Source: Wallemia ichthyophaga EXF-994 (lineage: Eukaryota > Fungi > Basidiomycota). From it: a stretch of DNA of 32,000 nucleotides. Positions 2,142 through 10,832 of this stretch are shown piece after piece. Location: positions 450,001-482,000 of the forward strand of contig NW_008806280.1 of the NCBI RefSeq assembly GCF_000400465.1, given 5' to 3'. The position numbers and the translations under genes are program-made. How positions within the stretch are numbered: the first letter of the stretch is position 1; each line of letters begins with the position of its first letter. The notes beneath the pieces are model-generated. The model was not told the DNA's origin and searched no databases. It worked only from the letters and a program-made list of their open reading frames with translations.

Positions 2142-2488
2142 GTTTGATGGTATTGCTCAACGATTACGTAGGTGTCCCCGAAATGGGGATTCATCAAGGC
2201 GAAAACAAAGTAGCAAATAAAATACTTAGATTTCTTCTGATAGGAATCCTGGATTATTTTACTTGAAATTTACTTGAATTTATTGCTAGGGTTATTGAGC
2301 GTAAAATTCGATTTTGGCGGCCAGTCTTCTCTTTTCAACAACCACGCTTGAAATTGCGTATAACATTGTAATTTCAAGGCGGTGGTTATAAAGCCAACGC
2401 TGGCAGTGAAAAGTGGATTGATCCTCAGCGCTGCCCACTCTTCACTGCCAGCGTTGGGCTGTTTGTAAGAGTGAGTTGAAAGCATATA

Positions 2489-2574
2489 CAGCCAGATGAT
2501 GAATAAACGCAAATGGGAATCTCTCTGATAAATTTCATGAACCGATAAACATTTATTTGCTAACTGAATCGCTG
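2489..2574 (+). ncRNA. Box C/D snoRNA, SNORD79 (U79/Z22)-like, predicted LSU rRNA 2'-O-methylation guide
   Basis: Box C ATGATGA is at 2496-2502, D' CTGA at 2525-2528 and D CTGA at 2564-2567, with a terminal stem CAGC/GCTG. The guide TGGGAATCTC (2514-2523) complements the conserved LSU motif GAGAUUCCCA. The D'+5 rule points to the A in GAG-A-UUCCC (about A2326 in yeast numbering, recalled). Confidence 0.85.
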
Positions 2575-2700
2575 TCGACGTGATTTTTATTTTGCTAACT
2601 GGCTTTTCACAGCGTGCCTTAAAGGGCGTGAATGGTGAAGGTGCTCACGGCGGCTATTTGAAATGTAAGTTGAACTCCCCCTCAGCAACCCAGATAGAGA

Positions 2701-2830
2701 CAATGATGACTGAGATCATGCACCACACATAATGATGCTTAGTACTTGTCAGTAACCTTTGTTAGCTCAAAGTGACAAGGACTGAGCGTCCACTTGATGA
2801 GAAAACGATCCGCTGCGTTCTTGCTGACCG
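2701..2830 (+). ncRNA. Long box C/D snoRNA: 5.8S rRNA A43 methylation guide plus bipartite 18S helix-34 antisense element
   Basis: Box C ATGATGA is at 2703-2709, D' CTGA at 2782-2785, C' TTGATGA at 2794-2800 and D CTGA at 2824-2827. The guide CGCTGCGTTCTT (2811-2822) complements 5.8S AAGAACGCAGCG. An internal hairpin (CTTGTCA..CTTTG/CAAAG..TGACAAG) is present, and the RNA is flanked by a 19/20-nt intronic inverted repeat (2681-2699 / 2831-2850). Confidence 0.85.
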
Positions 2831-3861: not shown

Positions 3862-4952
3862 TTACGCAGTTTGTATATCCAACTTTACAATATTTCTAGT
3901 CCTATTAAAGATGTCGTTGAAATAATAGCATCCAAAAGCACCGAAAGCAGCACCACCGAGGTGAGCGGCGTGATCGAGCAGCTTCCATCCAGCGAGCAGG
4001 CCAGCGACGTCGAAACCTACCATAGCCATTACACCGGTGGAGATAGGAAAACCGAAGAATGGCAGGAAGATTAAATTGACTTTGATGTCTGGGTTGCTGT
4101 ACGCACTCATCACTAGTGTCGAGTAAACTGCACCTGAGGCACCTAAAGACGGCATTAGAGAGCGCTGCAGATACTTGGTAGCACTGATAGATGCGAGATT
4201 CGACATGCATCCCGCCGAGAGATACAGTGAGAGCCACTTAAACACTGCCGTCCCTTCGACTGTATCCGCGTGCTGCTGTCGTTCGAGGAACTTGAAGCTG
4301 AGGGGACCAAACGAGTAAAGAGCGAGCATGTTGAAGCCCAAATGAGCTATGCTTCTGTGGCTGTCGCAATTGTTAAATTTTTCCGCGTACTAAAGTTAAC
4401 ATACCTAAATACACTCGTAAGCATGGTATGAAGAGGTGAGTTGTACGAGTGGAGGAAATGGCGCGCCATATATCTTTGTACAGCTGGATGGGGAATCTGC
4501 CATCCAGCAAAGACTACCGTGTTGAGAGCGATTATAGCAGCAACACTTCGCTGACCATCAGTCATTGCGAGTAAGTCTTGAATGGGTCAATTAGCCAATT
4601 TCAATGCAAACTAGGATATTTGCCCACTCTCGCTTGCCAGAATGTAAACACGCTGTACGGTTTCAGGCATTGAGTGTATTTTATCCAGACCTGCCTGGAG
4701 CTTACTAGCCAGATTCATCTCCTTGATAGTCTTCAAGCGGCCAGAAGTGATACCTAACCAATTACTGCTCTGCTTTTCTAGGTGATCAGTCTGCCAGTTG
4801 GTGATCTGAGAAGCAGCAACGACAGAGAAGCCAGACAAGGACAAGGCGAATACAGCGGATTTACCGATTGGGATGAAAGGTCTGTTGTTGCCACCGAAGC
4901 CGAAGCCACTCTTTCCGGCGTATCTCTGTGCAAGCCTGGCGGAGAAGAACAT
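3862..4952 (-). CDS. PCP1: Mitochondrial rhomboid intramembrane serine protease (Pcp1/PARL-like)
   Basis: Three exons, with introns at 4627-4577 and 4404-4361. Motifs FSHRSIAHLGFNM, catalytic GASG and DHAAHLGGAAFG are present, and the N-terminus is basic and presequence-like. Confidence 0.88.
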
Positions 4953-6301: not shown

Positions 6302-6903
6302 TTACTCAAGTGGAATATCAACTTCACCCTCCTTGATAGCCTCGATCAAGTCGTGTGGTTGCTTTCTGTCGACGGTGCAACCAACAGATTGGCAAGTACC
6401 CAAGACTTGCAAGACGGTGCCTGCCAAGTTCTTTGAGAGGGATTTGTAAGCCAAAGTTCTAGCAATGTTGATAATCTCGTCCAATGGAATTGAGCCAGAG
6501 TGCTTGACGTTCTTCTCCTTCTTTCTGTCACGTGGTGGCTCCTTCAAAGCTCTAATGACCAATGAGGAAGCTGAAGGAACGATAGCGACTTGAGCTTGAC
6601 GGTTTTGGACGGTGAGTTGAACGGTAACACGCAATCCCTTCCAATCACCGGATGCCTTGGCGATATCTTCACCAATCTTCTTTGGTGACTGGAGTGTGTG
6701 TTAGAATACCGGTCTGCGTAGAGCAACTCAAGCTCACAAGACCGAGTGGACCTGTATAAAACATGTAAGCATTTTATCACTAAACTTGAAAACACTGCAA
6801 ACTCACCAATCTTTGGTGCGAGTGCGGATGATGCACCAACTTCACCACCAACGGCACGGAGGTAGATGATCTTTACCTCATTTGGATCGATCTTTGGGGC
6901 CAT
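6302..6903 (-). CDS. RPL12: 60S ribosomal protein L12 (uL11)
   Basis: [33 protein letters not shown]|PLGL|[38 protein letters not shown]. Introns are at 6806-6752 and 6737-6689. Confidence 0.97.
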
Positions 6904-7248: not shown

Positions 7249-8487
7249 TCAAAGGACTTTGGATGGTATAACGAACATGAGGTGTTCGCTGCTATTGATT
7301 GGGCCACCGTAGAACGACTCAAAGAATCCCTGTGTGTTTGTGTGTCAGAATTACTGCTTACTCTCCCCTCTCTCCTCTCACATAGAAAGCTAAGCAGCTG
7401 TTGTTGCATATTCCTAGTGCAAACACGCCAAATTAAGCCAGATTCTTCAATGCTAGCCACCTACCTACCTATAAAAGCCTTTGACGCCAGCTCCGGGACT
7501 CCAAATAGTTTTATTAGCTGCCGGCTATCGACAATGACCTTGGCTGTAGCGCCTATTGGGAGAGTTGAGAATGTGCATTGCGTTAATTCCATCCACACCT
7601 TCCCTAGCCTGAGTTTCCTGGCCTTGGAATGTCGTCCTCACACCGACGTTGTCGTTGAGAATGCTGAATTCCAGCACCCCCTTCCAATCTGCTGTAATAG
7701 AGACGAAGTTGTCCAGTATCCGCAGTTTCTCGAGGACAGTCTTGAGCTTGGACATGTTGGGTAATTGTATTGTAACCTGCACGTGCGTCATCAGCGCTAT
7801 CACGGTGCTTCCAATGAGCGACAAACTGACATCTTTATCGGGAGTCTCTGGCCGGACAAAGGCATTGACGTATATCTGCTTCTGTGGCCTGCACGGCACG
7901 TCCTGCTCGATAGTGAAACGACTATTGTAGTGGCTCTATTGGGGAGTTTGAGTGTGTCTTACTTGTAATAAGCAATATCTCACCCACCAATGTACTTATA
8001 GACAGATTAAGCGTAGGTATAGCGCCCTTCTTCATAAGCCTGAGCAAAACGTTATCGGATTCGTGTGCTGATTTGATCGCTCTAAAGAGGTGCTCCATGC
8101 TGACTTCAATGTGTACCTCGTTGTTGTTGCTGCTCTCGCACCTGTATTCGCTGAATAGCGTGTTCTTCGTACTGTTAGTCTTGGCTTCTGGCTTAAGATC
8201 AGGCTCAATGACGCACTACGTTGAGCTGTCTGAAGCGCGTTGAGATTGCTGAAACGAAGCACACAGCTCACAACTCACAGCCACGATTTGACGGTCGTGT
8301 CTACGCCGCTCTGTCCTACGTAAACCGCGTCGTGCGTAAACCTAACTATTGCATGTCCATTGCCCAGCAGCTTAGCGAATGCTTGAGTTATCTGCGTAAA
8401 CAGCTTCACGTTATAGATGATGCATCTGAACTGTGCGCTGTTTCAGCCGTGCTCTCCCTAATTTACCCCCGCTCCTCTCACTCGCAT
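7249..8487 (-). CDS. HUS1: Checkpoint clamp (9-1-1) subunit Hus1/Mec3, multi-exon
   Basis: The spliced reconstruction reads MR|FRCIIYNVKLFTQITQAFAKL..W|LQLNV|NTLFSEYRCESSNNNEVHIEVSMEHLFRAIKSA..LPNMSKLKTVLEKLR..EHLMFVIPSKVL*, matching the Hus1 family pattern. Some internal junctions are approximate. Confidence 0.8.
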
Positions 8488-8645
8488 ATCGTCGTGGTAC
8501 CTTATCAAGACTCGAAAATCCATTTATAATTACATTTCTTATCATCGAATAAAGCATTGGCATTAGCATTGTTAGTTGCATCTAGTATCGTCACTTAAAT
8601 TGTGCCTTCTTTTTCATCTTTTAACTTGTTTTTTCACTCATCTTT

Positions 8646-10832
8646 TCAATCTGAAGTCTCAGACTCAGAAGCATCTTCCCCATACACACCAAATGTACGA
8701 GCAGAAGTAGTTGGCGACATTGGCGGTGTGCCAATATCTCCATATACATTCCTAAGGCGAGCATACGTTGGATTCTCATTGACACTATCCAGACTAGGTT
8801 GGCGACTACTTCCCTTCTCCCTGTTTCCACTCCCACTCCTGCCCTGTCCTTGATTGTACACGTGACGCATTGAGACCGGTTGTGGTTTAGGTTGCGCTGT
8901 GCTTGTCCCAAATCTGCCTGGAGATCCTCTCCCACTCAGCACCGAAGACGGCTCGAATGCGGAGGTGAGTGATTTCGGGAGTATTGGCCTCGCGCGACCG
9001 GGTCCACTTGTTCCGCTCGGTGCTCCTGCAGCAGCTGAGGCACTAGCAGGACTAGTCAAGCCCGCCTCATTTTCGCTCTTTTCATCAATATCAAACTGAT
9101 CGTCTTCGTCATCATCATCGTCATCTTCGTCAGCATCATCATCATCACCGTCCTTCTCGTGATCTCCAACTCCATTATCACCATTCTCTTCATTCTTGAA
9201 TTCAGCGTGTTTAGGGCCCTCCTCCACGACAACAAAGGATTTCTGACGCGCACGTTCATTCCAGTGTAGAGTACGACTGAGCGACGAGAACCAATCGGAT
9301 GACTGTTTATCAGCACATATGGTAGGACAAGGATACTTGGATGCAGTCACCTTAATATGGTCACCCTGCTTCAGCTCGACTCTGCCTCTGCCATCGAACG
9401 ATGCCCAGGCAGTAGAACGAGAGTTAAACGGTACGCAAATGCGCAACTCCATCGAATCAGGCAGGAGCATTGGTCTGAAAGACAACGTATGAGCACATAT
9501 AGGGCTTATTAAAAGAGCCGGTATTTCTGGATGCACGAGACTACCACCTGCACTTAACGAGTATGCGGTCGACCCCGTTGGAGTAGATACGCACAAACCA
9601 TCAGCTTGTACTGTCGTCAGGTGGTTCTCATCTCCGAACAGCTCCAACATGGAAACATATGGTGAGGGACCTCTGTCGACTACGAGATCATTGAGCACGT
9701 TGAATGTCTCAACGGGACGCGTCGTGTAACACATTATTTCCTTGTCGCGCTTCTTCGCTGTCACTGGTGGCGTGTTGCCCTCCAGGGCATCCCATCCTTT
9801 TCCTTCTACGTTGCGCATCAGTATTTCGCCAGTAGCACCACGACGGAAGGCTGGTCTACGCGCATTAGCAGATTGCGGATCTTTTTGTCGGTACTCGGAT
9901 CTAGGGGATGCATTAGCGGACTGTAACTGTCATTTATACGAATATGGTCTATCTACCCACCTATAAACCGTGCACGTAAACCTCATTCGTAAATTCACCC
10001 TAATGCCATCATCGACAATGCTATTGATCACCTTCTCCGAGTTTGTGAAATCAAAATTCGTTAAGAATCCAAGACTTCCGAGGGAGAATGGCAGCACGGG
10101 TGGGACGGTAGTCTGGAAGAGCCAGCTGGCAAACAACACAGTACCATCGCCACCGAGAGTGATTACGAGATCGAAAAGGTGGGGACTGTTGGTGCACATA
10201 TCAGGTGTCCAGAAACGCAGCTGTCCTTCGTGTGGATGCTGTGAAGATTTGCTTTCTGGTGAAATGCTCGTACTGCTCAGATTAGCAGAGAGATCTGAAC
10301 GACTTTGTGAACGTGGAGAGAACAAATGTGGATAGTCCTCTCTAATACCGGCAACATTGAATCGTTTCGAAGTGCGTAGCTGACTGTCTACGTAAACAAT
10401 CATTCCATGTCCTTTGAGATCGTCTCTAGGGGTATTCATCAGATAGAGCGCCAATTTACGAGTCTGACGTATAAGTTGATGATCTCTAGCTTTAGTGATG
10501 ATCATAACTGACTTGATTTTGCTCTTAACTCTCGCTCGGCCGAGCTGCTTGGACATTTCACGCACTCCGACGGCCGTCTCTGCGAGCTGCCGAGTGAGAT
10601 TCTGGCGATCGTGTGCAGCTTCATCGGAATCGTCCATTTCACCTTCGACTTCCCCCGCTATGCTCTCTAGCACTTGATTATTGCTGCCGACGAGATTTGG
10701 GGCTATCTGAAGGTTATCGTGTGGAGTGCGCTTGTCAAAGTCTGTAACCGTTGCCGCGCAGTGGTCGAGGTATGAATGCAAAAGACACGGGCTTGCTAGT
10801 GCTCTATCGCTGGACTCTTGCGTCTTCTCCAT
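8646..10832 (-). CDS. UTR1: ATP-NAD kinase (Utr1/Yef1-like)
   Basis: Motifs GGDGT, LGSLGFL, LNDLVVDRG, ADGLCVSTPTGSTAYSLSAGG and PICAHTLSFRP. One 60-nt intron at 9960-9901 (GTGGGT..GCTAAT..CCTAG). The first in-frame ATG is at 10832; the ORF-track start is a GTG. Confidence 0.93.

Follow-up and report, generated by a model that had tools for sequence, protein, structure and literature searches.

An intronic box C/D snoRNA of Wallemia ichthyophaga is best explained, in our moderately confident reading, as a double-guide methylation RNA, one guide being directed at the equivalent of 18S Gm1271 and the other at 5.8S Am42/43, with an extra base-pairing arm that is restricted to one clade. An earlier note on this DNA had singled out the element ACTGAGATCATGCACCAC, directly after box C of an intronic basidiomycete C/D snoRNA, as a bipartite 18S guide, possibly of the snR4 kind. 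The element is where it had been placed: it occurs once in the window (the whole stretch of DNA analysed, 32,000 nt long), at 2709-2726 on the + strand, and starts with the final A of box C (ATGATGA, 2703-2709). Its two blocks turned out to differ, the longer one being a classical guide and the shorter one an accessory arm kept in some Wallemia lineages only.

Host gene and anatomy of the snoRNA

The host intron is bounded by splice signals that were read directly (GTAAGT ... CAG, 2665-2883, + strand), and the snoRNA would be spliced out from it. The host gene is transcribed divergently from the proteasome activator gene Blm10. Its exons flanking the introns are diverged, i.e. unconserved, in the sister species (L027), and it appears to be of the non-coding type typical of fungi.

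In the minimum free energy (MFE) fold, the snoRNA is closed by a 17-bp terminal stem, the 5′ strand (2684-2700, +) pairing with the 3′ strand (2831-2848, +). An equivalent long stem, built from differing sequence, is found in each orthologue. Box C (AUGAUGA, 2703-2709, +) was read directly; it is AUGAUGA in the AT-rich lineage (L001) and GGGAUGA in L027. Box D (CUGA, 2824-2827, +), also read directly, is present in all orthologues. The flagged element is held in an 18-nt spacer (2710-2727, +), which is followed by a D′-like box. After it come 2 nt, an internal hairpin (2734-2790, +; MFE fold, arms 2734-2743/2781-2790 and 2745-2751/2773-2779), 4 nt and a box C′, UGAUGA (2795-2800, +), which reads UGAUGA in L027 and UGAUUA in L001 and was aligned to box C of the Aspergillus fumigatus snoRNA Afu_294. 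The hairpin bridging D′ and C′ is supported by covariation: between the window and L027, 8 of its 17 pairs differ, of which 7 still pair, 2 by double-sided change. Two motifs within it were tried as boxes and rejected. CUGA at 2782-2785 as a D′ box is a strand of the covarying hairpin and reads CUGG in L027; UGAUGC at 2733-2738 as a C′ box is on the opposite hairpin strand and reads CGAUGC in L027.

A 28-base block, GATGACTGAGATCATGCACCACACATAA, is shared identically by L027 and the window, whereas the two have drifted apart in the terminal stem, the hairpin and the spacer preceding the second guide. At the gathering threshold, Rfam gave no match in the whole window. Relaxed (lax-filter) scans gave sub-threshold matches only, which were taken as alignments and not as family membership.

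The host gene carries a second intronic box C/D snoRNA, at 2487-2575 (+) inside the preceding intron (2465-2611). It has AUGAUGA at 2497, a guide AAAUGGGAAUCUCU followed by a D′ box CUGA, and a box D CUGA at ~2565. It matches SNORD79 below threshold, with 30.3 bits where 47 would be needed; both the sister species and the AT-rich lineage have kept it, and it is probably a 25S Am guide of the U79 / Neurospora crassa CD14 type. The first exon of the host gene also contains, shortly 5′ of the splice site at 2465, a perfect 17-bp inverted repeat (2394-2410 / 2441-2457, +; CCAACGCTGGCAGTGAA / TTCACTGCCAGCGTTGG, with a 30-nt loop), which is mostly retained in L027 (about 4760-4815, minus strand). 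An Rfam match to mir-2 at this repeat is at chance level.

Orthologous loci

Protein searches with Blm10 and NAD kinase as queries did not find Wallemia relatives, and an exhaustive representative search with Blm10 gave, within the genus, only the protein of W. ichthyophaga itself. Orthologous loci were reached via the 90% cluster members of Blm10 and RPL12. Several ORFs of the window match W. ichthyophaga proteins exactly, and its CCT7 is 93% identical to that of W. hederae and 87% to that of W. mellicola. A second W. ichthyophaga strain is syntenic, with 99.2% identity across 20.8 kb and an identical snoRNA. L027 represents a sister species, whose Blm10 shares 93% of the protein and 80% of the DNA sequence, with the snoRNA in a syntenic position. 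In the AT-rich Wallemia lineage (L001-L004 and L014; GC 31%, Blm10 79% identical in protein), the locus and both guides are kept.

This Wallemia-like lineage (L001-L008, L014) turns up in more than one metagenome assembly of ENA and Logan, and its loci are collinear with the W. ichthyophaga region. Its GC content of 31% compares with 49% for the window and 42% for W. mellicola. Five other loci (L009-L013) came from a metagenome-wide pattern scan in which both guides were required (CATGCACCAC N55-85 CGCTGCGTTCTT); since none of the five has C/D boxes, they were rejected as chance matches.

In the W. mellicola loci (L017-L026, L028), neither guide was found, and this third lineage is unscorable at this locus. 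The order Ofd1 - NAD kinase - Hus1 - RPL12 - rhomboid is maintained there (about 7875-9540), and after rhomboid comes a pseudouridine synthase gene, in place of the snoRNA host gene and Blm10; the synteny break coincides exactly with the snoRNA locus. At the Blm10 loci of two more distant fungi the snoRNA was not found either.

RPL12, one of the two genes used to reach these loci, encodes uL11 (6302-6903, minus strand) and has two short introns around a middle exon of just 14 nt. This exon encodes the remainder of a split Gly codon and Pro-Leu-Gly-Leu (GPLGL in all), and the spliced product of 165 aa matches annotated W. ichthyophaga proteins exactly.

The D guide and 5.8S rRNA

The second guide, CGCUGCGUUCUU (2811-2822, +), is separated from box D by one base and is invariant in all orthologues. 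It is complementary over 12 bp to AAGAACGCAGCG, which we take to be the 5.8S sequence at this place, its position numbering being uncertain by 1. U2819 is the fifth base 5′ of box D (2824-2827), hence at D+5, and faces the first A of the second AA of the target. The guide would thereby direct a 5.8S Am known from fungi and plants: in N. crassa it is the methylated 5.8S-A42, with CD29 as its guide, and in Arabidopsis it is Am47, for which snoR9 is the guide. A weak Rfam match relates the Wallemia RNA to Afu_294, which bears the same 5.8S guide. The suggestion that the D-box guide targets 5.8S methylation agrees with this known site.

The 18S guide and its degenerate D′ box

The 18S segment facing the flagged element, GGTGGTGCATGGCCGTTCTTAGTT, is a universal eukaryotic 18S primer, so the native Wallemia 18S almost certainly carries it. 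Within the element, CAUGCACCAC pairs 10/10 with 18S G1268-G1277 in RNAduplex, for −17.8 kcal/mol on its own. With U2716 included, the D′ guide UCAUGCACCAC (2716-2726, +) faces G1268-G1278, giving an antisense length of 10-11 bp. It is invariant across all Wallemia orthologues, and the six positions after it (2727-2732) are 6/6 identical in L027. These positions span CAUA (2728-2731, +), the degenerate D′ box, which is CUUA in L001. C2723, paired with G1271, is the fifth base 5′ of CAUA, so that the guide would set the G1271-equivalent (human G1328, Arabidopsis G1275) at D′+5.

The relaxed Rfam scan aligned 2697-2768 to plant snoZ221/snoR21b (RF00300), with 16.5 bits against a gathering threshold of 44. 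Formally this sub-gathering score is a failure, yet such scores are usual for fast-evolving snoRNAs compared across phyla. The RF00300 consensus reads GuGAUGA-ugugGAgauAG-UCAUGCACCAC-U-CUGA, i.e. it has a canonical CUGA one base past CACCAC, at the offset that CAUA has in Wallemia. The Rfam models of snR40 and SNORD32 had no match in the window, relaxed scan included. Through their 5′ antisense element, Arabidopsis snoR21a/b are the assigned guides of 18S Gm1275, which was mapped by RiboMethSeq and corresponds to yeast Gm1271 and human Gm1328. In the fungal snR40 family (CD_43) the D′ guide directs methylation at 18S-1271, and in yeast snR40 the C at D′+5 is essential for Gm1271. By this likeness in sequence, the 10-nt block would be a classical methylation guide of the snoR21b type, with which fibrillarin/Nop1 would 2′-O-methylate the 18S G1271-equivalent, as it does for yeast snR40, human U32A and plant snoR21. 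The earlier note had judged a role in Um1269/Gm1271 methylation a poor fit, and here our result differs, snoR21b sharing both the guide and the D′ placement while being a guide for the mapped Gm1275/Gm1271/Gm1328. Other registers would place methylation on G1270 or on U1269, the latter being the snR55/U33 site; we infer that methylation occurs, and on G1271 rather than U1269. Around G562, in what we presume to be the 18S sequence there, the Wallemia guide matches ~6 bases, which makes the second snR40 target unlikely.

The D′ box itself is the delicate point. Against CUGA, CAUA of the window matches at 2 of 4 positions and CUUA of L001 at 3 of 4, a single substitution from the plant box, and the G of CUGA is missing in every Wallemia sequence, so that D′ activity is an assumption. 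The objection that no properly spaced D or D′ box follows the element was therefore half right: there is no consensus CUGA, but the conserved CAUA/CUUA stands at the offset of the CUGA of plant snoR21b and is joined by the hairpin to a good C′ box, with which the hairpin would juxtapose it.

The missing G also lends itself to another explanation, namely that D′ is inactive and the RNA a pure helix-34 chaperone or blocker, whose 18-nt pairing holds the 5′ strand open or gates the access of other helix-34 snoRNAs. The bipartite pairing is long (about −24 kcal/mol with the arm described below), and competition at helix 34 has been discussed in the literature for snR40, snR55 and snR4. We nevertheless hold this explanation to be the least probable of those weighed here. 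The D′-like element is conserved, its offset is precisely the canonical one, and the hairpin sets it beside a good C′; strongly divergent D′ motifs can be active, and often are; and yeast, plants and humans share the conserved Gm1271/1328/1275, for which Wallemia needs a guide. The methylation guide is thus retained as the preferred reading of this block.

The accessory arm

Upstream of the D′ guide, the arm ACUGAGA (7 nt, 2709-2715, +; its first A belongs to box C) is complementary to 18S U1283-U1289. RNAduplex reproduced both pairings given in the earlier note, 10/10 for the guide block and 7/7, with one G-U, for the arm. The loop between them needs a correction. It had been described as GCCGU looped out opposite a single U; the CCG of helix 34 is indeed unpaired, but U2716 can wobble with G1278, which leaves a 4-nt bulge, C1279-C1280-G1281-U1282, with nothing opposite (5 nt without the wobble). 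Guide and arm together form a duplex of −22.9 to −24.1 kcal/mol, to which the arm contributes ~5-6 kcal/mol.

How often would such a complementarity arise by chance? A test based on energy proved uninformative, since many random spacers simply prolong the guide helix without a break, and run-length counting was used in its place. Random 7-nt spacers reach at least 7 contiguous Watson-Crick or G-U pairs in 2.7% of cases when 18S 1278-1292 is allowed as target, in 7.2% for 1278-1300 and in 12% for 1278-1310; in duplex energy, 11-19% of them equal the arm. The arm begins with the final base of box C, a position that is bound by protein in the snoRNP. If A2709 is reserved in this way, 6 pairs are left, a number reached by chance in 12-37%. 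As 3-12% of random spacers match the run length and 11-19% the energy, the complementarity of the arm taken alone is barely, and only marginally, above chance.

Conservation adds to this. In L027 the arm is 7/7 identical, as compared to 65% identity at unconstrained positions (p about 0.05) and to 4/9 in the analogous spacer before guide 2. In the L001 lineage, AAAAAGUUU takes the place of the arm between box C and the 18S guide, the guide being followed by U-CUUA; an equivalent of the arm was not found there, the longest run of complementarity to 18S being 5, at an unrelated place. The arm is thus probably constrained in one clade, and neither ancestral nor indispensable to the snoRNA. The earlier note had named loss of its pairing arms in orthologues that keep the D-box guide as the outcome that would speak against it. 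This is what the AT-rich lineage displays for the arm, missing there alongside both guides, and not what is seen in L027, where the arm is kept.

The sequence GACTGAG is present twice in the snoRNA, at 2708-2714 and at 2780-2786. The second ACUGAG copy (2781-2786) pairs with GCUUAGU (2737-2743), which mimics 18S UCUUAGU. Because ACUGAG is duplicated and the partner of the copy mimics the rRNA target, the arm could alternatively form an intramolecular hairpin with 2738-2743.

All this leaves a possible, though less probable, alternative in which the RNA is the same methylation snoRNA but its 7-nt arm has no rRNA-pairing function, the match being due to chance, to a short divergence time or to an intramolecular role. 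The arm may be neutral, or conserved for another reason, given the marginal chance level, the single sister species and its absence in L001. The proportions of random spacers equalling it (3-12% in run length, 11-19% in duplex energy) fit this alternative, as does the L001 snoRNA, which does without the arm and has both guides and both box pairs; the evidence of constraint comes from one independent comparison, with L027. As to an intramolecular role, the second ACUGAG copy and its partner sit in the covarying hairpin, and in L027 the partner, GCUCAGU, would pair with the arm even better. But a helix between the arm and 2738-2743 would trap the guide and D′ in its loop and compete with the hairpin, whose covariation is clear. 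The 7/7 identity of the arm, against 4/9 in the spacer before guide 2 and ~60-65% in intron and stem, also goes against a lack of function, and conservation combined with the 3-12% chance of complementarity makes a pure accident unlikely, the argument being a post hoc one.

We therefore keep a methylation snoRNA with an extra base-pairing arm as the preferred reading. Extra base-pairing denotes short (4-8 nt) stretches of rRNA complementarity flanking a methylation target (van Nues et al. 2011, PMC3116282; van Nues & Watkins 2016, PMC5389607). Such elements are less conserved than the guide and patchy among lineages (van Nues et al. 2011, PMC3116282), are located mostly between D′ and C′ or in an unused guide slot (PMC3116282), and have been described for snR40 and snR55 at the same 18S site (PMC3116282). 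In the predicted duplex, the arm of Wallemia pairs with 1283-1289; it is outside the guide linked to D′, and 4-5 nt of rRNA separate its pairing from the guide duplex, on the downstream side. In vivo, ACUGAGA (six or seven bases of it) would extend the pairing over the 4-nt rRNA bulge (CCGU) to U1283-U1289, and would stabilise docking on helix 34, which is strongly structured. It may also aid the snoRNA in competing with other helix-34 snoRNAs, and the acetyltransferase would not be recruited.

The acetylation reading

The bulge left by the two blocks is exactly CCG(U), with the acetylated C, and this is the attraction of the reading proposed earlier: a bipartite guide like snR4 would loop out C1279-U1282 for acetylation by Kre33/NAT10 at the C1280-equivalent, and 5.8S would be methylated through the D guide. 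The rRNA segments covered by the blocks overlap those paired by the two guide sequences of snR4, GS2 (1264-1271) and GS1 (1286-1290). Moreover the helix-34 guide slot is empty in basidiomycetes, a survey of fungal snoRNAs having no snR4 family member in Basidiomycota, and the arm is kept in the sister species L027.

The architecture is another matter. In yeast snR4, the first five nucleotides, which precede box C, make up GS1 and pair with 18S 1286-1290. GS2, the partner of 1264-1271, occupies a loop that adjoins a conserved helix on the 3′ side of C′. The two are brought together by a pseudoknot, and rRNA 1272-1285 (13-14 nt) stays unpaired, presenting C1280 (Sharma et al. 2017). In the Wallemia RNA, a GS1 was sought at the 5′ end (2684-2702), where we found a strand of the 17-bp stem and no complementarity to 18S 1283-1290; the arm is 3′ of box C. 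Downstream of C′ (2795-2800) no GS2 was found, only the 5.8S guide and box D, and the block pairing with 1268-1278 lies between C and D′. In place of a 14-nt unpaired rRNA loop, the predicted bulge is of 4 nt (1279-1282) or 5 nt. An snR4-like architecture is thus not borne out in the position of GS1, in that of GS2 or in the size of the rRNA loop.

An acetylation guide is made very unlikely by these and other features. The architectural hallmarks of snR4, snR45 and U13 are all absent. The bulge, of 4-5 nt, comes from a quasi-continuous helix, the two blocks are contiguous between C and D′, and the 5′ end is a terminal stem. snR4, which binds Kre33 and Sni445, is an orphan as regards methylation, whereas on sequence both spacers of the Wallemia RNA resemble ordinary methylation guides. 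Since the 10-nt block is a genuine Gm guide whose D′ element lies at the canonical distance, the 18S duplex should be occupied by fibrillarin and Nop56/58. The arm is missing from another Wallemia lineage, in which a conserved acetylation would need the arm or a substitute. Finally, in yeast guide sequences alone are insufficient for recruitment, and Sni445 must bind near box D. A slight probability remains with an acetylation role because no relative of snR4 is known in basidiomycetes or beyond, its homologues having been identified within fungi only. Equally improbable is a dual function, by which, in the W. ichthyophaga/sister clade, an snR40-type guide with an acquired second block would not only methylate G1271 but also offer C1280 to Kre33/NAT10. 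If true, it would fill the helix-34 acetylation-guide slot outside Ascomycota with a minimal architecture unlike that of snR4; only if the acetylation reading holds is ac4C guidance in helix 34 outside ascomycetes concerned at all.

For the methylation reading that we prefer, the interest lies elsewhere. As judged from sequence comparison, the Wallemia RNA would join, as a basidiomycete representative, the conserved guides for 18S Gm1271/Gm1328 and 5.8S Am, and it illustrates the recombination of two known guides into one RNA. The series formed by plant CUGA and Wallemia CUUA and CAUA makes a degenerate D′ recognisable by comparison alone. Of two related lineages that share the guide, one has the arm and the other does not, so the contribution of such an arm to the methylation of a structured site is measurable.

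Comparison with known systems

The 18S half of the snoRNA is closest to snoR21a/b of plants, snR40 and U32A/SNORD32A, which likewise have UCAUGCACCAC between box C and D′ and the same G at D′+5. In the plant snoR21b consensus, even the GAgau between box C and the guide resembles GAGAU of Wallemia. The Wallemia RNA differs from snoR21, snR40 and U32A by its D′ box (CAUA/CUUA instead of CUGA), its long hairpin between D′ and C′ and its 17-bp terminal stem. Its second target also differs, 5.8S as opposed to 25S U898 for snR40.

The 5.8S half resembles snoR9, N. crassa CD29 and Afu_294, in which the antisense element CGCUG(C/U)GUUCUU adjoins the D or D′ box as it does in Wallemia. The guide with which it is partnered varies by lineage: it is directed at U2 snRNA in N. 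crassa, at another rRNA site in Afu_294 and at 18S Gm1271 in Wallemia.

snR4 and snR45/SNORD13 have in common with the Wallemia RNA that they are box C/D RNAs, and the rRNA segments of snR4 GS1 and GS2 are overlapped by the Wallemia blocks flanking the CCG of helix 34. They differ from it in the position of the blocks, in the loop (13-14 nt, against 4-5 nt) and in the canonical methylation-guide geometry of Wallemia, which is without any sequence or structural similarity to either.

With the class of van Nues and colleagues, the arm shares its shortness, its place beside the target, a weaker conservation than that of the guide and an occurrence limited to some lineages. It departs from that class in occupying the same spacer as the guide, abutting box C, and in skipping four rRNA bases that include the acetylated C.
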